This document shows, in pieces, positions 637 to 15,699 of a stretch of 64,000 nucleotides of DNA; within the stretch, counting starts at the first letter, position 1, and every line of letters begins with the position of its first letter. The stretch is taken from positions 186,001-250,000 of the IMG/VR virus record IMGVR_UViG_3300020477_000990; one strand, written 5' to 3'. The position numbers were made by a program, and so were the translations under genes. Under the pieces are notes generated by a model. The model did no database searches. It worked only from the letters and a program-made list of their open reading frames with translations, and was not told the DNA's origin.

Positions 637-2096
637 CTTGTATATTCTTCCCTAGCATAAGGTTCTCTAGATGGGAACCTTGTTAGGATTGTTCCTACCC
701 TCTCAGTATTTCTCGTATCAGTATCAGGACTTCTTGTATAAAGAGTATTTGTAAAATACAATTCACCTTTAGCATTTGCTTTAACAGTCAGCCCACCATA
801 ATTACTTGCACCAGCGGCTTCTGGTCCATTCATATGAACATTTGTTGCAGTTTCTATATGATCACCGCCACTTTTAATATTAGTACTTGCAGAAGCAGTA
901 AAATGATTTGCTCCTGTAGTTGATAAATGGAAATCACTTCCGGAAGTAATTTTTGTATTGTTACCTGTTTTAATGTTTACTGAACCTTCAACATCTAAAT
1001 TTAAATTACCTTCAACTGACGTTAATATGTTTGTTGTATCAGATGGTTGTCCACTATCACTAGTTTTATGAGCTTTAATATTAATATGTCTTCCTGACTC
1101 AATATTAAAATCTCTATCTGCTCTAAAATTAATATCTTTTTGTGAACGCACACTAATTGAATCATTTGCCCAAACATCTATTTTACCATCATTATCAATT
1201 TCAACATATCCAGATCCTTTTTTATTAATAATATAAACATTACCATTAGATTCATCTAATAATATTTGGGCTCCAGATTTAGTTCTTAATCTAATTAATT
1301 GTTGGTCACCATCATCCATTACAAATTGGTTTGCATCTGGTGTTAATATACCAAATACTTTTGAAGGTGTTTCACGTCTAGCTGATGACGATGTTAATCC
1401 TCTATTAGTATCAGATTCTAATCCTTGTTCTCTTAATCCTTCAAAGTGTGGAGTATGTGTAGGTCTTTTAATACCTGATTCTGGTTCACTAGTACTTTTT
1501 CGTTCTTTTGTCCAGTCAACGTCATCTGCTATTTCTGATAATTTATTGTATTCAGTTACTGGACAATCTTTTGATTCTTCATCATTAGATGTAAATGTTC
1601 CTGAACGAGCAATTCCTGGAACCATATGATTCATTAAATGTTGATATAAACAACCAACAACTACACCTCTAGAAATATCACCACCAACAAACATTACTAA
1701 AACTTTATTTCCAACATCAGGTGGAATCATCCACATACCATAACTTCTTTGTGAACCACTATATGTTTTAGATGGATCTGTATTTAAATGTGGAGTAACT
1801 ATTTCGCCTGGGGCAATATTATTATTAATATTTGTTGCTCCAGCAAATGGAGAAGACCAACGAACAGTTAAATTAAGATGTGTTTCATTAACATCAAATG
1901 AGTCTGGTAAAAAATCTACATTAACGTTTGCTCCAATTAAGCGAACAGTTAGCCTACCATTTTTTTGTATATCAGCGGCACTAATAACGATAGCTTCGTA
2001 TATGCCGTCATATGTTTTAACGTGACCTAGTGATTTAGCACTATCACTTTCTAAATTTTTAACATTTGATATTCTAGTTATTTTTTTAGTTGCCAT
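633..2096 (-). CDS. Baseplate central spike / gp5-VgrG-like protein (OB-fold + beta-helix, no lysozyme domain seen)
   Basis: 'PPDVGNKVLVMFVGGDISRGVVVGCL' gp5 OB-fold motif; C-terminal repetitive beta-strands; baseplate context. Confidence 0.8.
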   Translation of the reverse strand: MATKKITRISNVKNLESDSAKSLGHVKTYDGIYEAIVISAADIQKNGRLTVRLIGANVNVDFLPDSFDVNETHLNLTVRWSSPFAGATNINNNIAPGEIVTPHLNTDPSKTYSGSQRSYGMWMIPPDVGNKVLVMFVGGDISRGVVVGCLYQHLMNHMVPGIARSGTFTSNDEESKDCPVTEYNKLSEIADDVDWTKERKSTSEPESGIKRPTHTPHFEGLREQGLESDTNRGLTSSSARRETPSKVFGILTPDANQFVMDDGDQQLIRLRTKSGAQILLDESNGNVYIINKKGSGYVEIDNDGKIDVWANDSISVRSQKDINFRADRDFNIESGRHINIKAHKTSDSGQPSDTTNILTSVEGNLNLDVEGSVNIKTGNNTKITSGSDFHLSTTGANHFTASASTNIKSGGDHIETATNVHMNGPEAAGASNYGGLTVKANAKGELYFTNTLYTRSPDTDTRNTERVGTILTRFPSREPYAREEYTS

Positions 2097-5044
2097 TATT
2101 CTTCTCCAAATGATTCTAAAGTATTAGTATTATATATAAACGTTTCTCTAGGTCCTTTAATATTTTGTGTAAATTGACCACCTTCAAATCTACTAACAAT
2201 TTCTACTGCGGCATACACACCATTTAATAATCTTTCTTTATGTGTATCGCCTGGTGTTGCAATTCCAGTTTCTAAACTTGGTTCTCCAGCACTAGTACGT
2301 GCTGTAAATAGTAAATAATTTTCTCCAGCAAAGGTTGATACAGAGAATTCATCTGGATCATTTTCACTTTCTAACCAAAATATATCACCTCTAATTTCCA
2401 TATCCATTTGTACCATATCAGCTTGGAAGTCACTTAAAGTACCTTCCATTACCATATCAAATTGGTGTTTTCCTTTGTTTTTAGGATGTCCTTCACTATT
2501 ATATTTACCGCTCTCAGAACGATTAAGTCCCCACATTACTGTTACAGGACGATCCATACTTTCAATTTTATCAACTAATGATTGCTCATTTATTTTTTCT
2601 GCGTAAATTTGTTTAAAGTTTTCAGTTCCATCTACAGATACAGGAGTTTTTGCATCATCGTTCATTCTACCACGAACAATAACTTCTTTTTTATTTCCGA
2701 ACTCGTCTTCTACAACTTTAGTTCCACCATAAGTTGCTAACTGTCTATCTTCTTTTGTGTTTAAAGATTCAAGTGAGGTCGCCAATGCCTGGTCTGCTTC
2801 AAATGTACCATCTTTAATACCTGCAACAAATTGACTTACTAATTCTTTTCTTTCTTTTTCAAAATTACTTAATCCTGATTTCATTTCTTCTGTATTCTTT
2901 TTTTCTAATGAACTTGCTTTTGTTTTTAAATAACTTTTCCATGCTTCACGAACATTTTTTTGTTGTTCTCTAAAGTCATTAACTCTTATTGATGACTCTT
3001 TGATTTTTGTTTGTGCAGTATCATCTAACCCGGTAAATAAGTTTTGATAACTTTGTAGTGCCATGAAAAAATTATTATTATACTTAATATCAAATCTTAA
3101 AACTTTATCGTTTAACCCTGTAAATAGATAATCATATCTTTTCCTCATACATTTGTATGATGTAGTTTGACCTTCTTCACTACCAAAATTTTCATTTACT
3201 AGTGCTGTTATTTTCTTTTTTGCCCATTCTTCTGATTTATTAAATATTCCTTGTAAAATTTCTGGTCTGATAGTTGGAAACAATGATACTGTATAATGAT
3301 ATTCTCTAGCATAATCATTTCTTAATGAATCCCAAGCTATGTTAACAACGTCACATTTAATTTTAAAAATATATTTTATATGGTTTTTAACTTTATCTGA
3401 ATCATTTGAATCTGGATCTTCGTCATCAGGATTAAATCCTTTGGCTAAATTTTGCATTTTTTTTGAATGCGATAATCCAAATTCTAGTATTCTATCTAAA
3501 CTTGTATCTTGTGGAATAACAAATGATCTTAAAGTTGGATCCCATAACTCTTTATCCAATCCAGTACTTCTGTTTTCAGCAGTTGACTCTTTTTCTCCAT
3601 CAGTTGGAACAATATCATCATCGCCAATAAATTTTTTAGCTCCTGGACTTAAATGTATGTAATATTCATCTAATGTTTCTTTTTCAATTGCTAATTTATC
3701 AACTTCGTTAAGATTAATTGCTTCTGCTACTGAATCACATAAATTTTTAACTGTTCTAATATTGTTAAGTTGTAATGGTCTATCTGTAGTAAAGACGTGA
3801 TCGTATTTTCCTTGGTCACCTGCTCTAATACATTGTAAACTATATATTGCTCCTGATGTATCTACAGAAGTTTCTACAGCAATTATATTAATTAAAAATT
3901 GTCTTTCAGTATTTGGAATTGGTTTTACAATTTCTCCTGTATCTGGTTTACGTCCTATGAATTGGAGTTTCAATAAGTATGTTGCTTTTAAGCCATCTGG
4001 CATACCAAGTTTAACTGCACTATTAACTAAAATTGTTGTAAGTGATTCTCCTAATGGCTGAGCCATTGTAATCATAAAATCAACAGCCCCAGAAACTCTA
4101 TGAGCATTGCTAATTGGACCACCCACAGCATTAATTTGCACTCCTTGTATATTCATAACTGTAGAGGCTGTTTCTGCAATTGTAATAGGTTGTATAGTTG
4201 GACTCCATTTATTAAAAGATTTTCCACCTTCAACAATATATCTTTGAGCTCTAATGGCATCATCTTCATGAAGCATTTGTAGTTCAAAGTTATATGTTGG
4301 TCCATCATAATCTAAAAGTACATTTCTTTGAAAAAAGTGTGATAAATTTCTTTCAGCATCAGAAGTTACATTACCAGCTTTGTCTTTATAGTCGATATCA
4401 TCAAACCTTTGGAGAGCAACTGTTATATCTTTTTTAGTAAATTTTACAGCCGAACCTTCATGAGGATTTATAACAATTTTATCCTTTAGTACTGCTTTGT
4501 CTTCATTTGAAAACTTTTTTATTTTACCTTCTCCGGCATTTTCGTCACCTTCAAATAATCCTGGTTGTCTATCAGAAATTATTGATGCATTTGAATTTTT
4601 AATTATTTCTGCATGATCTCTATATGCTTTTGTATATATTGGATGTTGGAATGTTTTTTTCTCTTTACTTGCAACAGTATTATCAGTATTAGTAAGTGAA
4701 TTTTCTAAACTTCTTTTCCAACCAACATGAGCAAAACCTTTACCTGCGGCAGTATGATCACCTTTATAGTTGTTACCATGGGCTAATATTTCACTATGGT
4801 TAGTTTTTTTATTAGTAAGATCTTCGCCGCCAGTAACAATAGCTTCTGCAGATATACTATTTTTATGATTAGCTACCTCGGCAAATGCTCTAGGTTTATA
4901 AAATTTTCCATCTTTTATAAATCCACCTCTAGTTCGAACACCTCCCTCGATTTTACCCCAGTTTGGGTTTTCAGTCACAACCTCATCTTTCTTTTTATTT
5001 TTTTCTTTGTGTGCTGGATGTTTATTTTTTCCAAAGCCAACCAT
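2096..5044 (-). CDS. Large baseplate hub-like protein (gp27/VgrG-N-like)
   Basis: 982 aa; lies between LysM/wedge gene and spike; C-terminal 'YAAVEIVSRFEGGQFTQ' resembles hub proteins. Confidence 0.5.
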   Translation of the reverse strand: MVGFGKNKHPAHKEKNKKKDEVVTENPNWGKIEGGVRTRGGFIKDGKFYKPRAFAEVANHKNSISAEAIVTGGEDLTNKKTNHSEILAHGNNYKGDHTAAGKGFAHVGWKRSLENSLTNTDNTVASKEKKTFQHPIYTKAYRDHAEIIKNSNASIISDRQPGLFEGDENAGEGKIKKFSNEDKAVLKDKIVINPHEGSAVKFTKKDITVALQRFDDIDYKDKAGNVTSDAERNLSHFFQRNVLLDYDGPTYNFELQMLHEDDAIRAQRYIVEGGKSFNKWSPTIQPITIAETASTVMNIQGVQINAVGGPISNAHRVSGAVDFMITMAQPLGESLTTILVNSAVKLGMPDGLKATYLLKLQFIGRKPDTGEIVKPIPNTERQFLINIIAVETSVDTSGAIYSLQCIRAGDQGKYDHVFTTDRPLQLNNIRTVKNLCDSVAEAINLNEVDKLAIEKETLDEYYIHLSPGAKKFIGDDDIVPTDGEKESTAENRSTGLDKELWDPTLRSFVIPQDTSLDRILEFGLSHSKKMQNLAKGFNPDDEDPDSNDSDKVKNHIKYIFKIKCDVVNIAWDSLRNDYAREYHYTVSLFPTIRPEILQGIFNKSEEWAKKKITALVNENFGSEEGQTTSYKCMRKRYDYLFTGLNDKVLRFDIKYNNNFFMALQSYQNLFTGLDDTAQTKIKESSIRVNDFREQQKNVREAWKSYLKTKASSLEKKNTEEMKSGLSNFEKERKELVSQFVAGIKDGTFEADQALATSLESLNTKEDRQLATYGGTKVVEDEFGNKKEVIVRGRMNDDAKTPVSVDGTENFKQIYAEKINEQSLVDKIESMDRPVTVMWGLNRSESGKYNSEGHPKNKGKHQFDMVMEGTLSDFQADMVQMDMEIRGDIFWLESENDPDEFSVSTFAGENYLLFTARTSAGEPSLETGIATPGDTHKERLLNGVYAAVEIVSRFEGGQFTQNIKGPRETFIYNTNTLESFGEE

Positions 5045-5050
5045 AGTTAC

Positions 5051-5335
5051 CTACCTTATATTTTTTAATTTAGGAATTCTAATTACTATACCTGCTCTAA
5101 AATCTTGAATAGGATCAATTAATATGTTTTCATTTCTTACAGCAAATACCCACCAATAGTCTACAGTTCCATATTTATTGTTTGATAATAAATCTGGTCT
5201 TTTGTCATATTTTGATTCAATAACATAAGACTCATCTGACTCATCTTTAATAATATATTTTGGATCCATTATATCAAGGTAATCACCTTTAATTGATGTT
5301 TTACTATATGGACTTGTAGATTTATATGATGCCAT
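5051..5335 (-). CDS. Baseplate wedge LysM/gp53-like protein
   Basis: 'RPDLLS...YGTVDYWWVFAVRN...DF..G..IRIP' LysM/tail-X pattern. Confidence 0.75.
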   Translation of the reverse strand: MASYKSTSPYSKTSIKGDYLDIMDPKYIIKDESDESYVIESKYDKRPDLLSNNKYGTVDYWWVFAVRNENILIDPIQDFRAGIVIRIPKLKNIR

Positions 5336-6956: not shown

Positions 6957-7963
6957 CGTTATTTAAAAAGGCGGCGTGTTTTACTGACATACACTTTGGT
7001 ATGAAAAACAATGCTAGGCAACATAACATAGATTGTGAAAATTTTGTCAAATGGTTTATAGAAGAAGCTAAAGAACGTGGATGCGAAACCTGTTTCTTTT
7101 TAGGCGATTGGCACCACCAAAGATCCGCAATTAATATTTCAACATTAAATTATTCAATATCAAATTTAAAAAGATTAAATGAATCTTTTGAAAAAGTTTA
7201 TTTTATTGTTGGTAATCATGATTTATTTTATAGAGATAAACGTGAGATATCTTCAGTAGTATTTGCTAATGAACTTGCAAATATTAAAGTAGTTGATGAA
7301 TGGATTGTTGAAGATGAAGTTGCTATTATACCATGGTTAGTAGGTGATGAATGGAAACAAATTAAAAAAATGAAATGTAAGTATATGTTTGGTCATTTTG
7401 AATTGCCACATTTTAAAATGAACGCAATGGTAGAGATGCCAGATATAGGAACAATACGAAGTGACCATTTTAAAAATGTTGGTCAAGTGTTTACAGGACA
7501 TTTTCATAAAAGACAACATTCAGGGAATATTTCTTATATTGGAAATCCTTTTCCTCATAACTTTGCAGATGTTTGGGATGATGACCGTGGAGCAATGTTT
7601 TTAGAATGGGACCAAAAACCAGAATATAGAATTTGGCCTGACGCACCTAGATATAGATCAATTAATTTAAGCAAGTTATTAGAAGACCCAGAAACAGTTT
7701 TAGAACCAAATTCTTATATAAGAGTAAAAGTAGATTTAGATATTTCATATGAAGAAGCAAATTTTATTAAAGAAAATTTTGCACAAAATTATGATATTAG
7801 AGATTTATCTTTAATACCGCAGAAAAAAGAAGAACACGCACAAGAAGTAGAAGGTGAGATTATATTTGAATCAGTTGATCAAATAGTAACAAATCAATTA
7901 TCAAAAATAGAATCTGATACTTTTGAAAATAATGTGCTAATTGAGATTTACAATAATTTATGA
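6953..7963 (+). CDS. gp47: Recombination endonuclease, Mre11/SbcD-like
   Basis: Phosphoesterase motifs DIHFG, GDWHH, GNHD, GHF, GHFH. Confidence 0.92.
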   Translation: MTLFKKAACFTDIHFGMKNNARQHNIDCENFVKWFIEEAKERGCETCFFLGDWHHQRSAINISTLNYSISNLKRLNESFEKVYFIVGNHDLFYRDKREISSVVFANELANIKVVDEWIVEDEVAIIPWLVGDEWKQIKKMKCKYMFGHFELPHFKMNAMVEMPDIGTIRSDHFKNVGQVFTGHFHKRQHSGNISYIGNPFPHNFADVWDDDRGAMFLEWDQKPEYRIWPDAPRYRSINLSKLLEDPETVLEPNSYIRVKVDLDISYEEANFIKENFAQNYDIRDLSLIPQKKEEHAQEVEGEIIFESVDQIVTNQLSKIESDTFENNVLIEIYNNL

Positions 7964-9792
7964 TTAAATTACAAAACATAACTATTAAAAATTTTATGAG
8001 TGTAGGTAATACTACTCAAGCAGTTAATTTTTCCCATGATGGACTTACACTAGTTCTTGGTAATAATTTAGACTTGGGTGGTGAAGGTTCTAGAAATGGT
8101 ACTGGAAAAACTACACTTATAAATGCTCTAAGCTATGCAATATATGGACAAGCACTTACAAATATTCGTAAGGACAATCTTGTTAATAAAACTAACAATA
8201 AAAACATGATTGTTACTGTGGATTTTGAAAAGGATGGTCACAAGTATAGATTAGAGAGAGGACGTAAGCCTAATAAATTCCAATTCATTGTTGACGATGC
8301 CGTTGTAAACGAGCAAGGTACAGATGAAGCACAAGGAGAAAATAGACTTACGCAAGATGAGGTGTTGAGGGTATTTGACATGAGCCACACCATGTTTAAA
8401 CATATTGTTGCCCTCAACACTTACACCGAACCATTTTTAGCAATGAAATCAAATGACCAACGTTCTATTATTGAAGAATTGTTAGGTATATTAAGGTTAA
8501 GTGAAAAAGCAGAAGTATTAAAAGAAAGAATTCGAGAAGTTAATGATGATATAAAAACTGAACAAGCACGATTAGAACAAATTAAAATATCAAATGAAAA
8601 AATTGAAGATACTATTAGAAAGTTTCATATTAAAAGTATTGCTTGGGAAGAGTCACATAAAAAAGCAATTACAGAACTTACTAATGGTATTATAGAATTA
8701 GAAAAAATAGATATTAATAGTGAAATTGAAAAACATAAATTACTAACATTATGGCAAGAACAATCTCAAAAAATTAAATCATATACACAAAATCTAAACT
8801 TTAATAAAAGTAATATAGTTGCTGTACAGAAGCAAATAGACTCTTTAAACACACAATTAAACACACTTGATGGTAAGCAATGCCCTATGTGTGAACAAGA
8901 ATTGCATACAGAGAAGCATACGCACTTGGTTGATGACGTTAAGGTACAACATACTGCTAAACTTGAAGAAGAAACACAAATACAATCAACAATAGAGTCA
9001 ATTGAAAAGCAAATTGCTGAACAAGGAGATATTGGTGAAAGGCCGGAAACAGCATACAGTTCAGCTGATGAGGCATATCAACATAGGCAAAATCTTGCAG
9101 AGTTAAAAACACAATTAGAAACAGAACAGCAAAAAGAAAATCCTCATACAGAACAAATTAATACTTTAAAAACTAAAAATATAGAAGAAGTTGATTATGC
9201 ACAAATTAATTCTTTAACAAAACTAAAAGATCATCAAGACTTTTTATATAAATTATTAACATCAAAAGATTCATTTATACGTAAAAAAATTATTGATCAA
9301 AACTTATTATATTTGAATTCAAGATTAAATTATTATTTGGATAAAATTGGTTTGCCTCATGAGGTTGTGTTTAAATCAGATTTATCTGTAGAAATTACTG
9401 AACTAGGACGAGAGTTAGACTTTGATAACTTATCTAGAGGTGAACGTAATAGACTTATACTTGGTTTAAGTTGGGCATTTAGAGATGTGTATGAATCAAT
9501 GAATACTACTGTAAACTTATTGTTTATTGACGAACTTGTAGATTCTGGTATGGATACAATGGGTGTAGAGTCAGCAATGTCGGTATTGAAAAAAATGTCT
9601 AGAGAACGTAGTAAAAATGTTTTCTTAATTTCACACAGAGATGAGCTAACATCTAGATGTTCTAATGTATTAAATGTTGTTAAAGAAAATGGATTTACAT
9701 CATTTGCTACAGACATTGAAACTGTAAGTCATAAATCACATCCTGATTTGTTTAAGGAAAAAGCAAATGAGCACGATACAGTTAGCACCTAA
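7960..9792 (+). CDS. gp46: Recombination ATPase, Rad50/SbcC-like
   Basis: Walker A NGTGKTT, coiled coil with CPMC zinc hook, LSRGE signature, LFIDE Walker B. Confidence 0.93.
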   Translation: MIKLQNITIKNFMSVGNTTQAVNFSHDGLTLVLGNNLDLGGEGSRNGTGKTTLINALSYAIYGQALTNIRKDNLVNKTNNKNMIVTVDFEKDGHKYRLERGRKPNKFQFIVDDAVVNEQGTDEAQGENRLTQDEVLRVFDMSHTMFKHIVALNTYTEPFLAMKSNDQRSIIEELLGILRLSEKAEVLKERIREVNDDIKTEQARLEQIKISNEKIEDTIRKFHIKSIAWEESHKKAITELTNGIIELEKIDINSEIEKHKLLTLWQEQSQKIKSYTQNLNFNKSNIVAVQKQIDSLNTQLNTLDGKQCPMCEQELHTEKHTHLVDDVKVQHTAKLEEETQIQSTIESIEKQIAEQGDIGERPETAYSSADEAYQHRQNLAELKTQLETEQQKENPHTEQINTLKTKNIEEVDYAQINSLTKLKDHQDFLYKLLTSKDSFIRKKIIDQNLLYLNSRLNYYLDKIGLPHEVVFKSDLSVEITELGRELDFDNLSRGERNRLILGLSWAFRDVYESMNTTVNLLFIDELVDSGMDTMGVESAMSVLKKMSRERSKNVFLISHRDELTSRCSNVLNVVKENGFTSFATDIETVSHKSHPDLFKEKANEHDTVST

Positions 9793-10924
9793 TAATTTAG
9801 CATATAAATTTGAAAGTCCTGGAAGATATGCTACTCATGTAAATTATCTTAATGGACATAATAGTTATGATATTATAGAATTTAATTCTTATTTAGATAA
9901 GCCATATCATCTTAATGATAGTTTTAAATTTGTTAATTTAACTAAATTAAAAAATCCAAATACCAGAGTATTAATAAGTCATATAAGAGAACGTTTAAAT
10001 TCTGATAGTAGTATATTACGAGGCCAGGCAGTTTTTATTGATTGGTTAGTGCAAAGCGAAGTATGTAAGGCAGAGCAAATTTTATATATTGTTGGATGTC
10101 AAACTGAACAAGATTTTTTACAAGAGTATACACAGGCTTGTTTAAAAGAACATACATTCCAACATAAAATAAAAATATTATCATATCCTCATTTTGAAAC
10201 TGATGCTGTTTGGCGTATGTATCAAGAAGGATTATCTATTGCAAATAGAAATTATGATGAACTAAAAACATTTGTTAAAAAAGATTTTTTATTTTTAAAT
10301 GCAAAAATACATAAAGCTAATAGAATTAATTTAGCAGTTGATTTGTTTCAACGTGGAATTTTAGATAATGGAATTTACTCTTTAAATACAAGTCATACAA
10401 GTACTGAACTTTATCCTTTAGTACAACACTTAATAGATCAATATTCATTTGGTCATTTTTATAGTAATATCCCACATAGTCCAGATAATATTGAGTACGA
10501 TAGTGAGTCGGACCATTATTTAGGTTATCCTTTTGATTATACTTTATATGAAAAAACAAAATATAGTTTAGTCGCAGAAACTCATTATGAAAATAATCCT
10601 TTTTTATTAACAGAAAAAACAGCAAGACCTATTTTAAATAAGCACCCTTTTGTTATAGCCAGTACGGTTGGTTTTTTAAAACAATTACATGAATTTGGAT
10701 ATCATACTTTTAATGAACTATGGCCAGAAGAATATGATTTAGAAACTGATACAACAAAACGTTTAAGCCTTGTTGCAGATACAGTTGAATACATAAACAA
10801 TAATACTGTTGATTGGATTTACGCATATCAAATCTCTAAGGAGAATTATACAACCCTGCAGAGGAGATATGATAGAAGTGTTAGACTATTAACAGAATGC
10901 CTTAGCGGTTCTTTTCGGATTTAG
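9767..10924 (+). CDS. Hypothetical protein, possibly glycosyltransferase-like
   Basis: C-terminal 'VAETH...FLLTEKT.RPI....PFVI' resembles GT10-like C-termini; weak. Confidence 0.4.
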   Translation: MSTIQLAPNNLAYKFESPGRYATHVNYLNGHNSYDIIEFNSYLDKPYHLNDSFKFVNLTKLKNPNTRVLISHIRERLNSDSSILRGQAVFIDWLVQSEVCKAEQILYIVGCQTEQDFLQEYTQACLKEHTFQHKIKILSYPHFETDAVWRMYQEGLSIANRNYDELKTFVKKDFLFLNAKIHKANRINLAVDLFQRGILDNGIYSLNTSHTSTELYPLVQHLIDQYSFGHFYSNIPHSPDNIEYDSESDHYLGYPFDYTLYEKTKYSLVAETHYENNPFLLTEKTARPILNKHPFVIASTVGFLKQLHEFGYHTFNELWPEEYDLETDTTKRLSLVADTVEYINNNTVDWIYAYQISKENYTTLQRRYDRSVRLLTECLSGSFRI

Positions 10925-11408: not shown

Positions 11409-11705
11409 ATGACGAAAGATACAGTAATATCTAACATATATGGTGAAGATGAAAATGGGAATCCTATATTCATAGATAGGATTTATGGAGATAAAAATAC
11501 ACAAAGACTTATACAAAAAGATGGGTCTGAATATAAAGGTAGTATAACTAAACGTAGAATTATAGTAAAAAGAAGTAATGGAGATAGTTTTACATCACAC
11601 GTACATGAAACAGCAGACGGAAGATGGTTTGATAGAGGTGGTATGCCAATTGATAAACCAAAGAATTTAGATACTAGAAAAAAAGAAGAGGAAACACAAG
11701 AGTGA
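11409..11705 (+). CDS. Hypothetical protein
   Basis: 98-aa ORF behind promoter, overlapping next gene start. Confidence 0.6.
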   Translation: MTKDTVISNIYGEDENGNPIFIDRIYGDKNTQRLIQKDGSEYKGSITKRRIIVKRSNGDSFTSHVHETADGRWFDRGGMPIDKPKNLDTRKKEEETQE

Positions 11706-12220
11706 GTGGAGCAAAATCTAAAAATAAAGGTAAAATATACGAAAGAGATGTAGCAAATTTTCTTTCTGAATTATACAAAGAACCTTTTACAAGGGTTCCA
11801 TATTCAGGTGCATTTATTGGTGGACAAAATATTAAAAGAATAGATAGTTTATCTGAAAATCAAACTAGAGGTTTTAAAGGTGATATTATACCACCTGATA
11901 CATTTCCATTGTTAGTTATTGAAGCAAAGAACTATGGAGAGTTTCAATGGCATAATTTAGCATTAGGTAAAGAAGTAAAACAGTTAGATGAATGGATCAA
12001 ACAAGCACAAGATTCTTGTGAAGATAAAGACAAATGGATATTAAGTGTTAAAATATCTAGGCAAGGTGAATTTGTTTTATGGGATCCAACTTTATGGAGT
12101 GATTTAGATACAGACAATATGTATAAGCAATTCTTTTATACTGAAGCTTCAAAGTTTTGGCAATTAAATAGTGATAAAGTTAAACAACAATCTAAACAAC
12201 TACTTGACCAGCCTTCTTAA
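11702..12220 (+). CDS. PD-(D/E)XK nuclease, Holliday-junction-resolvase (Hjc)-like
   Basis: 'KNKGKIYERDV', 'GDII', 'IEAKNY' = E..D..ExK pattern. Confidence 0.75.
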   Translation: MSGAKSKNKGKIYERDVANFLSELYKEPFTRVPYSGAFIGGQNIKRIDSLSENQTRGFKGDIIPPDTFPLLVIEAKNYGEFQWHNLALGKEVKQLDEWIKQAQDSCEDKDKWILSVKISRQGEFVLWDPTLWSDLDTDNMYKQFFYTEASKFWQLNSDKVKQQSKQLLDQPS

Positions 12221-12428
12221 ATCGTTCTGCATTTTCACCAACATACTTAATCATCTCATTACGGTCCACATCGGAAAGTGACCATGCTTCTTCCCAAGTA
12301 ATTGATCCTCGCATATACCAACAAATTTCTGTTATTTGTTTTTGTATTGCAGAACGTTCTTTAGCTAACTGATCAAAGTAGGCATTTATTTCTTGAGGCT
12401 CAGCCCTTAAGAGCCAGCTACGAAAAAA
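12192..12428 (-). CDS. Start-less -1 frame extension of the 12407..13267 ORF (gp51/tail chaperone GT-like; 'WYMRGSITWEEAWSLS')
   Basis: 78 sense codons open from the slippery site to TAG at 12192-12194; TGA immediately precedes; only ATG/GTG codons are internal; absent from ORF track. Confidence 0.75.
   Translation of the reverse strand, partial: FFRSWLLRAEPQEINAYFDQLAKERSAIQKQITEICWYMRGSITWEEAWSLSDVDRNEMIKYVGENAERFKKAGQVVV
12397..12428 (-). promoter_or_regulatory. Programmed -1 ribosomal frameshift signal
   Basis: T TTT TTC heptamer (12422-12428), 6-nt spacer, GGCUC/GAGCC stem. Confidence 0.75.
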
Positions 12429-13267
12429 TCAGTTGGATTAATGTCTAACGTAGTTTCCCACTCATGTTTACATTTTTCATTTTGACAAATTAACGATATT
12501 TTTTTGTCAACGTCTAATGCATTAATTTCTGCTAATTTACTGTCAATTGCCTTAGCGGCAGTTGAATCTATATTTTGTAAAAATGCAAAAATTTCATTTG
12601 CGTGAGTTTCTTCGTCACCATCTGGTGTTACTACTTTAACAATACTTCTAGCAAGTAGTGATACACTAATGTCAGCCATTTTATTAAAACTTTTATTATA
12701 CACAGACATAGCGTCAGCACTAATGTCAGCAGTTTCTTTTGTCAATTGCTGTATTGCTTTTGTTTCATCAAAAGCCGCAAGTGCCGCCTCTGTTTGCATT
12801 GTGTAAGTATAAGGTTTAATATAAACTTTAATGCCAGTCTCTAATGTTACAACGTATTCAGTTTCTAACATTTTAGCAGTAGCTAACAAGTTACGCATAT
12901 TAACAGTAACTCTGTTGTCAGTTTTACAGCTAGGACATTTAGCAGTAACTTCGTGTTCATCTCCACTAGATGCAATTTTAATTGCAATTAAAAGAGTATC
13001 AATATCTGTTATTGGAATGTTTTTAGGTTCGCCAACTCCAGGAACACAACTTTTAATAACACTAGTAATAGCTTCGCCATTTAATAATGCATCTGGGTTT
13101 TTAGTTAATACTTCATCACGACCTGTCATAGCCATAACAGCTAATTCACCACTCATTGATTGTTCCATCTCTGGATTAAAAGCACCTTGACTTGGTATTT
13201 TTACATACAGTTTTGGAGCTCTATAATACTTCGATAGTTTGCTTTCGGTTTTAGTTTCTGTTGCCAT
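12407..13267 (-). CDS. Baseplate hub assembly / tail assembly chaperone, gp26-like
   Basis: 'MT..DE.L.KNPD.LLNG.AI..VIKSC', 'D.D.LLIAI.IAS.G', CPSC and C-terminal Cys pairs. Confidence 0.7.
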   Translation of the reverse strand: MATETKTESKLSKYYRAPKLYVKIPSQGAFNPEMEQSMSGELAVMAMTGRDEVLTKNPDALLNGEAITSVIKSCVPGVGEPKNIPITDIDTLLIAIKIASSGDEHEVTAKCPSCKTDNRVTVNMRNLLATAKMLETEYVVTLETGIKVYIKPYTYTMQTEAALAAFDETKAIQQLTKETADISADAMSVYNKSFNKMADISVSLLARSIVKVVTPDGDEETHANEIFAFLQNIDSTAAKAIDSKLAEINALDVDKKISLICQNEKCKHEWETTLDINPTDFFVAGS

Positions 13268-13362: not shown

Positions 13363-15699
13363 ATGGCAGATGGCGATAGAATTATAGTTGATAAGATAAA
13401 TTGGAGTCCAGATCTTCCGGAATGGGCTACAGAAGCCACTCAAGCTAAAATTTTAGAAAAATTAGGTGGCCAATTAGATATTGTTAAAAAGACAGCAACT
13501 AAAACTACAACTAATTTAAAAGATAATACTAAAGCCCAAAAAGATACAACAACAATGCTTGAAAAAGGCTTTAAGTCGATGAAAGAAGCGGCTAGAAACC
13601 AAACGTCAGCCTTTAATAAATTTTCAGCACAAAAGCTAATACCCAAAACACCATTTAAAGCATTTAATAATGGAATTCAAAAAGTTGCAGGTAAATTAGG
13701 AATATTTGGTGCGGCACTAGGTGCAGTTGGATTTGTTATTGGTGGAATTATTGGTAGAATGAAAGCCTTTAGTGATCAATTTAGACAATTGTTTGCCGTA
13801 GGTTTCAGATTTGAAAAAGGTTCAATAGGTTTAGCACAGGCGGCTGTTAGAGCTGAAATGAGTTTAGATCAGTATAGTGAAATTTTAGGAAGATATTCAA
13901 CTACAATAGGAGTACTTGGTACAAGAGCATTTTCAGATTTAAATGTACAGATGAGGGAAACATTAATGGAAGTTGGATTACTTGGTATGAACTTATCTGA
14001 GTTAACTGAGTATACAGCTGATTATTTAGATCAAAGAAGATTGCTTGGTATATTAGAAGAAACAGATAGAGCGGCGTTGGCACAACAAACAGAAACATAT
14101 TTAAAAAATATTTCTGCAATGTCTACTTTACTGAATGTATCTAGAGACCAAATATCACAAATAGTTAAATCATCTGTAACAGTAGCGGCATTTACAAATG
14201 CATTAAACAAAGCACCACAAGAGTTACGAGAGCAGATGTTAGCTACAGCACAGGTAGTTACTGCCGGTTTTGCGGCATTAGGTAATGATTATGGTAATGC
14301 TTTAGCAAATGCATTTACAACAGCAGTTGGACGAGGTGGGTTATACTTCACAGAAGTAGGTAGAGAACTATTAGCAATAAGTCAACCATTGTATCATGCA
14401 ATGTCTGAATTAGCCAACACAGTTGGTCCACAAGAAGCTGGTGCTAAATTTAGTGCAATGTTAGATATAATGGCAAATGTATCTGATGCAGAACGTCAAC
14501 GTTTAATGATTTTAGAACGTTCTAATACTCAATATGCACAAGGTGCCAGAAATATGATTACATTAATTAATCAAGCACAACAATTAGAAGAAGAGCAAAT
14601 TGCGGCAATTAGAAACATGGAAAAAATGAGAGAGGCTCAAAGACCAGATGATACTACAAGAGCATTTACAAATTTAGAAATTGCAATGCAAAAATTAAGA
14701 GTTGTTTATGATAAGTTTTTTACAACATTATTTGGTAACAATAGAATATTAAATCTATTTGAAAGAATTATGATTAAGTTATCTAAAGCAGTAGTTAAGT
14801 TTGCTGATTGGATTTTAGAAAGAGCAGAAAAAATTGGTGATGCTATTGCTAATGTAGTTACAAGATTAATGGATTGGATTAAAGGTTTTGAAGGAATGGG
14901 ACTAGGAGCGTCAATTGCCAGAGCATTAAGCGGTGTGTTTGGATTAATGTCAGATATGATTGTTGGTGCAATTGTTAAAGGAATGAAAATGGCTCTACCA
15001 GGTGGTGGAGCGGCAAAAAGAGCTGAAAGTCAAAGACAAATAGCAAATCAAGATATTCAAAGATTATCAGGTGGTGGCTTAAATATAGATCCTAATAATA
15101 CAACATTTAATAAAGAATGGTTAAAGAGATGGTCCGGACCTAACGCAACAAGATTTGATTTTGATAACGATATAGTATCAGGAATTGCTAACGAATTACC
15201 ACCTACTCTTGCTAAAACGTTTGCATCAATGTTTCCAGATGGTGACGTAGATACGTCAGCAATAGAAACAATGCAATCTAGAGAAGGTGTTTTTGCAACA
15301 ATACTTGAAGAAGTAACTAAAAGTGGAAATAAAGATTTAATTGAAGCATTAAATAAATTATTACTTTCTCAAGCAGTTCTAGTAAGTAATACTGCAAAAG
15401 CAACACTAGATGACGAACTAGGTGTTAAAACAACTACTATGTCTGGTACTGACATTGCTAATAATTTAGCTGGCAAACAAGATGATAATGCAGTATTAAC
15501 TGGTACAAAAACACCAGCTGAAATTACTGAAGCTAAATTAAAAATAATGAGACAATATTTGCCAATGGCCGGAAAAGGTGATCCAAATCAGGACGCAACT
15601 GGTAATTATTATGAACAAATGATTGCTGAATTAAAGATTTTAAACGGTAAACAGGAAAAACAAATAAAAGAATTAGAGTCAGCAAACGCCAAATTATAA
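13363..15699 (+). CDS. Tail tape measure-like protein
   Basis: 778 aa, Ala/Leu-rich helical, Gly-rich hydrophobic segments; adjacent to chaperone genes. Confidence 0.7.
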   Translation: MADGDRIIVDKINWSPDLPEWATEATQAKILEKLGGQLDIVKKTATKTTTNLKDNTKAQKDTTTMLEKGFKSMKEAARNQTSAFNKFSAQKLIPKTPFKAFNNGIQKVAGKLGIFGAALGAVGFVIGGIIGRMKAFSDQFRQLFAVGFRFEKGSIGLAQAAVRAEMSLDQYSEILGRYSTTIGVLGTRAFSDLNVQMRETLMEVGLLGMNLSELTEYTADYLDQRRLLGILEETDRAALAQQTETYLKNISAMSTLLNVSRDQISQIVKSSVTVAAFTNALNKAPQELREQMLATAQVVTAGFAALGNDYGNALANAFTTAVGRGGLYFTEVGRELLAISQPLYHAMSELANTVGPQEAGAKFSAMLDIMANVSDAERQRLMILERSNTQYAQGARNMITLINQAQQLEEEQIAAIRNMEKMREAQRPDDTTRAFTNLEIAMQKLRVVYDKFFTTLFGNNRILNLFERIMIKLSKAVVKFADWILERAEKIGDAIANVVTRLMDWIKGFEGMGLGASIARALSGVFGLMSDMIVGAIVKGMKMALPGGGAAKRAESQRQIANQDIQRLSGGGLNIDPNNTTFNKEWLKRWSGPNATRFDFDNDIVSGIANELPPTLAKTFASMFPDGDVDTSAIETMQSREGVFATILEEVTKSGNKDLIEALNKLLLSQAVLVSNTAKATLDDELGVKTTTMSGTDIANNLAGKQDDNAVLTGTKTPAEITEAKLKIMRQYLPMAGKGDPNQDATGNYYEQMIAELKILNGKQEKQIKELESANAKL

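Follow-up and report, generated by a model that had tools for sequence, protein, structure and literature searches.

Long-tailed phages commonly express their tail assembly chaperones from one gene as a short and a long form, the latter arising by a conserved -1 ribosomal frameshift. In the closest known system, lambda gpG/gpGT (Levin et al. 1993; Xu, Hendrix and Duda 2004, as cited in PMC5009743), the ribosome slips on an X XXY YYZ heptamer a few codons before the stop, the two products share the whole N-terminal part, the extension ORF has no start of its own, and the arrangement is conserved despite very low sequence identity. The group includes myovirus examples such as P2 E/E+E'. To our knowledge and in the literature we searched, T4-like phages have no recognised counterpart. 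T4 instead encodes two baseplate hub assembly chaperones, gp26 (208 aa) and gp51 (249 aa), from two paralogous genes whose products are about 20% identical and which lack a slippery site: gene 26 ends GAG TTC TTT GAG... and is followed by gene 25. Gene 26 also has an internal-start product, 26'. The gp51 protein is absent from the virion and its role is still described as unknown (PMC3004832), whereas both proteins are annotated as 'tape measure protein assembly chaperone' in Acinetobacter phage Octan (MT409116).

Here we analyse a 64,000-nucleotide stretch (the window) of the 328-kb genome of an uncultured marine jumbo phage, IMGVR_UViG_3300020477_000990, for which a search of the phage collection found no near-identical DNA. 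A sequence-only reading of the window had proposed a programmed -1 frameshift that fuses a gp26-like to a gp51-like tail chaperone, stimulated by a downstream stem and analogous to lambda G/GT, in a gene transcribed divergently from the tape measure. We find that what it observed in the sequence is correct in every particular, while its interpretation is only partly supported: comparative evidence strongly supports its central claim, but the nature of the extension, the stem and the neighbouring gene need correction or qualification.

Results

Anatomy of the gp26-like gene

We first verified each element on the minus strand (Table 1). The zero-frame ORF ends GAT TTT TTC GTA GCT GGC TCT TAA and carries the heptamer T TTT TTC in the X XXY YYZ register, 16 nt before its stop. 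Since a TGA lies directly 5' of the heptamer in the -1 frame, the -1 ORF cannot be entered from further upstream, and its first ATG, GTG or TTG is the ATG at codon 38 (MRG...). The predicted products are thus 286 aa and 282+76 = 358 aa. The T6 run is real DNA, since two independent DNA runs reproduce it without an indel, and one RNA-library contig also spans the site unchanged.

Table 1. Coordinates of the features at the locus, numbered from the first nucleotide of the window
Feature	Coordinates	Strand	Description
Zero-frame ORF	12407..13267	-	286 aa plus TAA stop (12409..12407); T4 gp26/gp51-family baseplate-hub assembly protein; predicted short product
Slippery heptamer	12422..12428	-	T TTT TTC, in register with Phe281-Phe282
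-1 frame stop	12429..12431	-	TGA directly 5' of the heptamer
-1 frame ORF	12192..12428	-	78 codons from the heptamer (12428..12195) plus TAG (12194..12192); C-terminal 76 residues of the predicted 358-aa trans-frame product
Candidate 3' stimulatory hairpin	12397..12415	-	GGCUC-N9-GAGCC, 6 nt after the heptamer; encloses the zero-frame stop
Divergent neighbour	13363..15699	+	778-aa protein; probable tail tape measure and presumed client of the chaperone

The N-terminal part belongs to the T4 gp26/gp51 family

The 286-aa protein matches Pfam PF12322 (T4_baseplate) with an E value of 1.1e-19 and 71.5 bits against a cut-off of 24.5, residues 51-282 aligning with profile positions 34-218 of 219, and matches the baseplate hub family phrog_150 at 2.7e-24. 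Its AlphaFold2 model (pLDDT 92.3) retrieved T4-like baseplate hub and hub-assembly proteins from BFVD by Foldseek, with E values down to 3e-25. Four cysteines (C111, C114, C261 and C266), forming a central CxxC and a C-terminal pair, are invariant in 55 sequences, as is F281, and the equivalent four-Cys pattern and C-terminal Phe-Phe or Val-Phe motif can be read in T4 gp26 and gp51. The window contains only one PF12322 ORF and 95 phage records gave one match per genome, although a very divergent second paralogue elsewhere in the 328-kb genome cannot be excluded.

By contrast, we found no sequence or fold relationship to known tail assembly chaperone (TAC) families. Neither part of the gene matched a TAC family in Pfam or PHROGs, the gp26-like protein had no sequence match in the PDB, a Foldseek search of the PDB with its model gave a best E value of 0.52, and a wide VIA-align search gave only helical-hairpin matches with Z below 8. 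The resemblance to G/GT is therefore one of functional analogy and not of homology.

The slippery heptamer and the -1 ORF are conserved

We next asked whether relatives preserve the heptamer. All 83 analysable relatives from IMG/VR and GenBank (33-78% identity, 21 clusters below 60% identity) keep an in-frame slippery heptamer at the same aligned place, 10-19 nt before the stop: T TTT TTC in 63, only A AAT TTT in 18 and T TTT TTT in two. Over the 21 clusters, the joint probability of slippery spelling given the amino acids and codon usage is 1.3e-11. The -1 ORF is 73-103 codons long in all but one relative (mostly 78-81) and opens 0-13 codons before the heptamer (0 in the window). No start codon occurs within its first 30 codons in 58 of the 83, and PA5oct has none anywhere in its -1 ORF. 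Only 14 relatives, including Phosso, Atu_ph07 and 121Q, have a start codon within the first 10 codons; there the small ORF could also be translated by coupling, and GenBank annotates it as a separate gene.

Several lines of evidence indicate that the -1 ORF is coding. In the window's own clade, substitutions in this ORF fall mainly on its third codon positions (48 against 20 and 11), as expected under purifying selection, and AlphaFold2 predicts a helical domain with a pLDDT of 87.8. Moreover, a profile built from 48 such ORFs finds 670 proteins, among them six of 333-351 aa that carry the gp26-like domain and the extension in one frame (metagenomic proteins that we labelled P0143, P0151, P0156, P0158, P0186 and P0232). 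In these natural long forms the extension domain is clearly homologous (E 1e-23 with the extension profile) and follows the same Phe-containing junction. In the two contexts examined (loci L086-L088 for P0143 and L089 for P0151), the long form lies directly downstream of a separate short PF12322 paralogue, so that no frameshift is needed.

Possible RNA structure downstream of the heptamer

We then probed for a structure 3' of the heptamer. The window does contain the proposed stem, with a folding energy of -6.9 kcal/mol on its own, and this is the consensus hairpin of the window's clade (five loci, L006, which is the window, to L010). However, this 5-bp hairpin is weak and the 80-nt fold of the window is indistinguishable from dinucleotide shuffles (z = 0.05). 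RNAalifold gave no consensus structure on all 67 distinct junctions, and on the large clade B it gave only an implausible structure that pairs the heptamer itself. We therefore turned to per-sequence z-scores with internal control windows and to an explicitly stated structure. Across the family, the 60 nt after the heptamer have a mean z of -2.46 against -0.2 to -0.5 for control windows in the same genes (Mann-Whitney p 8e-23), and in one large clade a two-helix structure has 77% of cells paired, four pairs with compensatory changes and a covariation score reached by 0 of 500 shuffles. The indications of a stimulatory structure thus come from the family as a whole and not from the window.

The extension resembles the tail of gp51

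The sequence-only reading took the downstream ORF to be gp51-like and T4 to encode the two halves as separate genes. This is not what we find. Both gp26 and gp51 match PF12322 over its full length, gp51 through residues 1-201, and gp51 has about 48 extra C-terminal residues; the extension aligns only with this helical C-terminal tail of about 50 residues. An hhalign comparison of the extension profile with gp51 tails gave a probability of 63.6% and a P value of 6.7e-5, with a score of 27.5 against 10.0+-2.3 for 200 column permutations, none of which scored as high, the alignment being colinear over extension 5-79 and tail 4-64. The natural long forms also align colinearly with gp51 over their full length. 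The strength of this homology is moderate: a first comparison with Tevenvirinae gp51 tails alone was weak (probability 28%) and improved after the addition of RB16, Slopekvirus, Bragavirus and RB49 gp51; the gp51 tail is about 25 residues shorter than the extension; and Pfam's gp51-tail model PF28602, recorded on all T4-type gp51, is not on record for the natural long forms P0143 and P0151. Moreover, a profile search with a gp51 alignment added no new diversity, and a Foldseek search of BFVD with the extension model found only homologous small uncharacterised ORFs and a weak 'tape measure chaperone' hit (E 0.31), but not gp51. T4 thus encodes a short form (gp26) and a long form (gp51) as paralogues, with the 286-aa product corresponding to gp26 and the predicted 358-aa fusion to gp51, which makes the G/GT analogy stronger than had been argued.

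Genomic context

The sequence-only reading also took the divergently transcribed neighbour for the tape measure, an identity that we consider probable but not certain. Its named look-alikes in a language-model atlas are all tape-measure families (scores 0.93-0.94), and the PA5oct and 121Q orthologues in the same position are virion structural proteins, yet it has no Pfam or PHROG hit and no significant BLASTP match to T4 gp29. Unlike lambda-type chaperone genes, which lie between the tail tube and tape-measure genes on the same strand, the gene studied here is divergent from the probable tape-measure gene, and its downstream neighbour is a convergent PDDEXK endonuclease gene. The T4 genes likewise sit in the hub and tape-measure neighbourhood. 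As the only hint on the location of the protein, the PA5oct orthologue of the gp26-like protein lacks the ESI-MS/MS virion mark that its neighbours carry.

Discussion

We conclude that this gene, which encodes the phage's only detectable member of the T4 gp26/gp51 family, very probably (at roughly 85%) gives rise to a short and a long hub assembly chaperone by programmed -1 frameshifting. In this view, most ribosomes terminate at the TAA and make the 286-aa form, while a fraction slip back one nucleotide when tRNA-Phe occupies the P and A sites on T TTT TTC, probably helped by an RNA structure that starts a few nucleotides downstream. These ribosomes would then read CGT AGC TGG... and add a 76-residue helical domain. 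The short and long forms would share the whole N-terminal domain, as gpG and gpGT do, and by inference would act together, in a ratio set by the frameshift efficiency, in assembling the hub and tape-measure core of the tail without being part of the virion. Our analysis establishes the sequence anatomy and its conservation, coding selection on the -1 ORF, the existence of natural in-frame fusions and the family membership of the N-terminal domain. By contrast, that the long product is made, that the slip is ribosomal, how efficient it is, that the proteins act as chaperones, and what they bind or serve as client, whether tape measure or tube protein, are inferred from sequence, without protein, ribosome-profiling or reporter data. 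The locus differs from lambda G/GT in that the protein is a 286-aa, Zn-ribbon-containing PF12322 protein and the heptamer is T TTT TTC or A AAT TTT instead of G GGA AAG.

Transcriptional slippage is unlikely but not excluded. If RNA polymerase added an extra U on the T6 run in a fraction of transcripts, standard translation would give the identical 358-aa protein, and 65 of the 83 relatives have a run of six or seven T's. However, 18 of the 83 have only five T's, preceded by AAA, yet preserve the X XXY YYZ pattern as A AAT TTT, which fits tandem tRNA slippage and not homopolymer slippage. Runs used for programmed transcriptional slippage in bacteria are typically 8-9 or longer (reviewed in PMC5009743), and the conserved feature 3' of the site appears to be an RNA structure at the spacing typical of ribosomal frameshifting. 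The RNA-library contig, the only one across the site, has the genomic run length, but this is weak evidence since it has depth 2 and contigs hide minor variants.

Slightly less likely still, the downstream ORF might be a separate small gene, translated by termination-reinitiation or coupling, from a non-canonical start, or from the internal ATG at codon 38 (a 40-aa product), with the heptamer simply spelling a conserved Phe-Phe motif. Phe-Phe (or Val-Phe) is indeed conserved at this position in T4 gp26 and gp51, which do not frameshift; the early start codons of the 14 relatives often overlap the stop (ATGA, TAATG); and gene callers predicted many stand-alone versions of 49-102 aa. Yet in the 58 relatives without a start codon in the first 30 codons, which include the window and PA5oct, the N-terminal half of the extension is conserved, and it is predicted to fold as one domain with the rest. 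Codon choice is also non-random far beyond what Phe-Phe requires, T4 spelling the same motif TTC TTT, and the natural in-frame fusions show that the extension works as a C-terminal domain of this protein. Finally, a sequencing or assembly error in an error-prone homopolymer, or decay of a long-form gene of the kind found in frame in other phages, is effectively refuted, since the same frame relation occurs in 83 independent assemblies and in isolate genomes finished by different methods, DNA reads reproduce T6, the zero-frame stop always follows within 1-5 codons and the -1 ORF is under purifying selection.

Conserved -1 frameshifting in tail assembly chaperone genes is a classic feature of long-tailed phages, but we found no report or annotation of it in gp26/gp51-family genes, at least within the open-access literature. 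Our findings indicate that a large, widespread clade of jumbo myoviruses very probably uses it in this gene, which is mis-annotated in every public record examined, either as two genes or with the extension missing, such that the annotation of hundreds of genomes would be corrected. They would also add a protein family unrelated to G/GT to the known set of frameshifted tail chaperones. A broader hypothesis, which we regard as about as likely as not, is that a short/long chaperone pair is a universal requirement of long-tail assembly that extends to T4-like phages. The enigmatic 'hub assembly catalyst' gp51 would then be the GT-like long form and gp26 the G-like short form of one ancestral gene, expressed by -1 frameshifting in the jumbo myoviruses (RaK2/121Q, PA5oct, Atu_ph07 and marine relatives) and resolved into two paralogous genes in T4 and some other lineages. 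As the protein fold is unrelated to lambda G/GT, this would be convergent evolution of the same expression logic on a different fold. It would give gp51 a concrete mechanism, in which the shared domain binds the tape measure gp29 and the tail domain recruits hub or tube components. T4's gp26 and gp51 have exactly the short/long architecture that the frameshift would produce, which provides a direct hypothesis for the function of both proteins.

Architecture of the proposed frameshift site

Knowing that the sequence-only reading had described a slippery heptamer, an open -1 frame and a downstream stem at the end of a gp26-like ORF, we first verified each of these elements on the minus strand and found that everything it described is indeed present in the sequence. 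The 286-residue zero-frame ORF ends GAT TTT TTC GTA GCT GGC TCT TAA, and a slip of one nucleotide at T TTT TTC would give a product of 282 + 76 = 358 residues. The first ATG, GTG or TTG of the -1 frame is the ATG at codon 38. At its 3' end, the -1 ORF overlaps the 3' end of a convergent endonuclease ORF, and no terminator-like site lies between the two.

Coordinates of the features in the window and in the compared loci
Feature	Sequence	Position	Strand	Description
Zero-frame ORF	window	13267..12407	-	286 aa
Slippery heptamer	window	12428..12422	-	T TTT TTC in X XXY YYZ register (Phe281, Phe282)
-1 frame stop 5' of heptamer	window	12431..12429	-	TGA
-1 ORF	window	12428..12195	-	78 codons
-1 ORF stop	window	12194..12192	-	TAG
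Hairpin	window	12415..12397	-	GGCUC-N9-GAGCC, 5 bp, starts 6 nt after the heptamer, -6.9 kcal/mol
PDDEXK / RusA-like endonuclease ORF	window	11702-12220	+	172 aa, convergent
Overlap of -1 ORF and endonuclease ORF	window	12192-12220		29 nt
Probable tape measure gene	window	13363-15699		778 aa, divergent
gp46-like SbcC-type ORF	window	7960-9792
ORF of 385 aa	window	9767-10924		starts 26 nt inside the end of the gp46-like ORF (9767-9792)
Variable stretch in a related strain	window	12342-12372		1-nt deletion at 12365, 1-nt insertion behind 12372
Span of metatranscriptome-library contig	window	12307-12471		depth 2
End of short paralogue	L089 (two-gene lineage)	1680-1704
End of short paralogue	L086 (two-gene lineage)	1015-1040
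Genes 51, 26 and 25	L091 (RB16)	1201-2887		in tandem on one strand
Genes 26-25 and 51-27-28-29	L005 (T4)	3405-5229		divergent
Internal-start product 26'	L005 (T4)	3803-4090

To identify the encoded proteins we searched Pfam and PHROGs. The 286-residue protein matches Pfam PF12322 (T4_baseplate; E 1.1e-19) and phrog_150 'baseplate hub', whereas the extension matches no family in either library (the Pfam copy searched does not include PF28602, see below). The window belongs to the genome of an uncultured marine jumbo phage (IMGVR_UViG_3300020477_000990, 328 kb) that is found in many marine metagenome runs and has no close DNA relative among isolated phages. The nearest isolates, at 29-41% protein identity, are Sinorhizobium phage Phosso, Pseudomonas phage PA5oct, Agrobacterium phage Atu_ph07 and the 121Q/RaK2 group. 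The gene is flanked by the divergent 778-residue gene, which is followed by the T4-type portal, and by the convergent PDDEXK endonuclease gene, with the gp46-like gene further on.

The proposed recoding site is conserved

We next asked whether the site is retained in relatives. All four isolates examined have T TTT TTC at the same place and a -1 ORF of 73-79 codons with a conserved sequence. Among 80 IMG/VR loci plus these four isolates, 83 were analysable, and every one has an in-frame slippery heptamer 10-19 nt before the stop: T TTT TTC in 63, A AAT TTT only in 18 and T TTT TTT in 2. The -1 ORF is mostly 78-81 codons long and opens only 0-13 codons upstream of the heptamer. In 58 of the 83 loci it has no start codon within its first 30 codons (PA5oct has none at all), and only 14 of 83 have one within 10 codons. 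Given the encoded amino acids and the codon usage of each gene, the probability that all 21 clusters (below 60% identity) are slippery is 1.3e-11. By contrast, T4 gene 26 has the same Phe-Phe motif but spells it TTC TTT, and is followed by gene 25 rather than by an extension. In the 18 loci with only five T's the pattern is kept as A AAT TTT, and there the Phe-Phe motif is restored only in the trans-frame product, which favours tandem tRNA slippage over polymerase slippage.

To guard against errors in the T6 run, we inspected independent sequencing data. Two independent DNA runs reproduce the run. A related strain in another marine sample (run X4, contig record 16) differs within the extension by six substitutions and by paired 1-nt indels that restore the -1 reading frame, as expected if the extension is translated. 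One metatranscriptome-library contig spans the site without change, but this is weak evidence on transcription and cannot exclude rare slipped transcripts.

The -1 ORF codes for a C-terminal domain

In the clade of the window itself (loci L006-L010), variable columns fall 48 to 20 to 11 on the third, first and second positions of -1-frame codons, and AlphaFold2 with 48 sequences predicts a confident helical domain (pLDDT 87.8). A profile of the extension finds 670 proteins in 1.84 billion representatives, most of which are short ORF calls. Six hits, however, are proteins of 333-351 residues in which a gp26-like domain and the extension are one in-frame polypeptide. The two of these whose contigs were examined (P0143 and P0151) lie directly downstream of a second PF12322 paralogue that lacks the extension. 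The extension therefore functions as a C-terminal domain of this protein family, and a two-gene solution exists beside the frameshift solution. In this two-gene lineage the short paralogues also end with slippery-looking runs after the Phe motif in L089 and L086 (TCT TTT TTC AAT GAC TAA; AAT TTT TTA CCG...), but in L089 the -1 frame stops at once and in L086 it is not the frame of the next gene; these runs could be relics of a frameshift site or simply Phe codons.

Relation to T4 gp26 and gp51

T4 gp26 (208 aa) and gp51 (249 aa) both match PF12322 over its whole length, and gp51 has about 48 extra C-terminal residues. We compared the extension profile with the gp51 tail and obtained an alignment with a probability of 63.6% and P 6.7e-5, with a score of 27.5 against 10.0+-2.3 for 200 column-permuted controls, none of which scored as high. 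The alignment is colinear over the whole tail at a relaxed threshold, with one 12-residue gap, and natural long forms align colinearly with full-length gp51 from end to end. The protein database records a second Pfam family, PF28602, on all T4-type gp51 (P0001-P0092), presumably the C-terminal tail; it is not recorded on the long forms of the jumbo-phage lineage. Thus, the predicted trans-frame product corresponds to gp51 and the zero-frame product to gp26, while the downstream ORF alone is not a gp51 homologue, contrary to its description as gp51-like in the sequence-only reading.

The window holds only one PF12322 ORF and each of 95 related phage genomes holds one detectable copy, although a very divergent second copy cannot be excluded. 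In RB16 and Slopekvirus, genes 51, 26 and 25 lie in tandem on one strand after 48 and 54, whereas in T4 genes 26-25 are divergent from 51-27-28-29; the two paralogues stay adjacent in every arrangement seen. T4 gene 26 is itself annotated with a second, internal-start product (26'), and T4 therefore also makes more than one polypeptide from this gene, by a different route.

RNA structure downstream of the heptamer

In the window itself, the 80-nt stretch at this site folds no better than shuffled sequences (z 0.05), so the stem proposed from sequence alone is weak. Across 67 distinct junctions, the 60 nt after the heptamer have a mean z of -2.46 and a mean MFE of -15.6 kcal/mol, while six control windows in the same genes give z of -0.2 to -0.5 and MFE of -5.6 to -11.4 (Mann-Whitney p 8e-23, though the sequences are not independent). 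No single consensus fits all clades. In one clade of 25 sequences, a two-helix structure has 77% of cells paired, against 19-37% in five of the six slid registers and 60% in the +1 register, with four pairs showing compensatory changes and 0/500 shuffles reaching its covariation score. In another clade, 3 of 10 pairs show compensatory changes.

Presumed function and client

T4 gp26 and gp51 are listed as hub assembly chaperones, with gp51 required for assembly but absent from the particle and of unknown function (PMC3004832). One GenBank record, that of Acinetobacter phage Octan, annotates gp26, gp51 and gp28 as 'tape measure protein assembly chaperone', and the idea of a chaperone for the tape measure therefore already exists. 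The divergent 778-residue neighbour is probably the tape measure, since all of its named language-model look-alikes are tape-measure families and its orthologues in PA5oct and 121Q are virion structural proteins. It has, however, no Pfam or PHROG match at all and no significant similarity to T4 gp29, and its orthologues in isolated jumbo phages are annotated only as 'structural protein' or 'hypothetical protein'. The predicted structure of the gp26-like protein (pLDDT 92.3) resembles no solved structure, including known tail assembly chaperones, but does resemble baseplate-hub proteins of many myoviruses in BFVD. The resemblance to lambda G/GT is therefore one of expression logic and presumed role, not of descent.

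Interpretation

The observation made from the sequence alone is confirmed. Its interpretation is supported in part: the programmed -1 frameshift stands as the best explanation, but the stem of the window is weak and the downstream ORF by itself is not gp51-like. What the analysis establishes is the anatomy of the site, its conservation and the coding nature of the -1 ORF; the frameshift itself, its ribosomal nature and the chaperone role are inferred. We put the probability of a programmed -1 ribosomal frameshift at about 0.85. Transcriptional slippage is an unlikely alternative, disfavoured by the loci that keep A AAT TTT with only five T's, although the single metatranscriptome-library contig cannot exclude rare slipped transcripts. 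Independent translation of the downstream ORF is slightly less likely still.

None of the roughly 170 related GenBank records examined annotates slippage; they show a baseplate hub gene plus a separate hypothetical protein, or no second gene. Full-text searches outside the subscription-only literature, together with the frameshifting review (PMC5009743) and the PA5oct paper (PMC7318152), gave no mention of a frameshift in this family. Frameshifting of the G/GT style is already known, and what differs here is that it would operate in an unrelated chaperone family, a reading that also offers a useful explanation for T4 gp26 and gp51.
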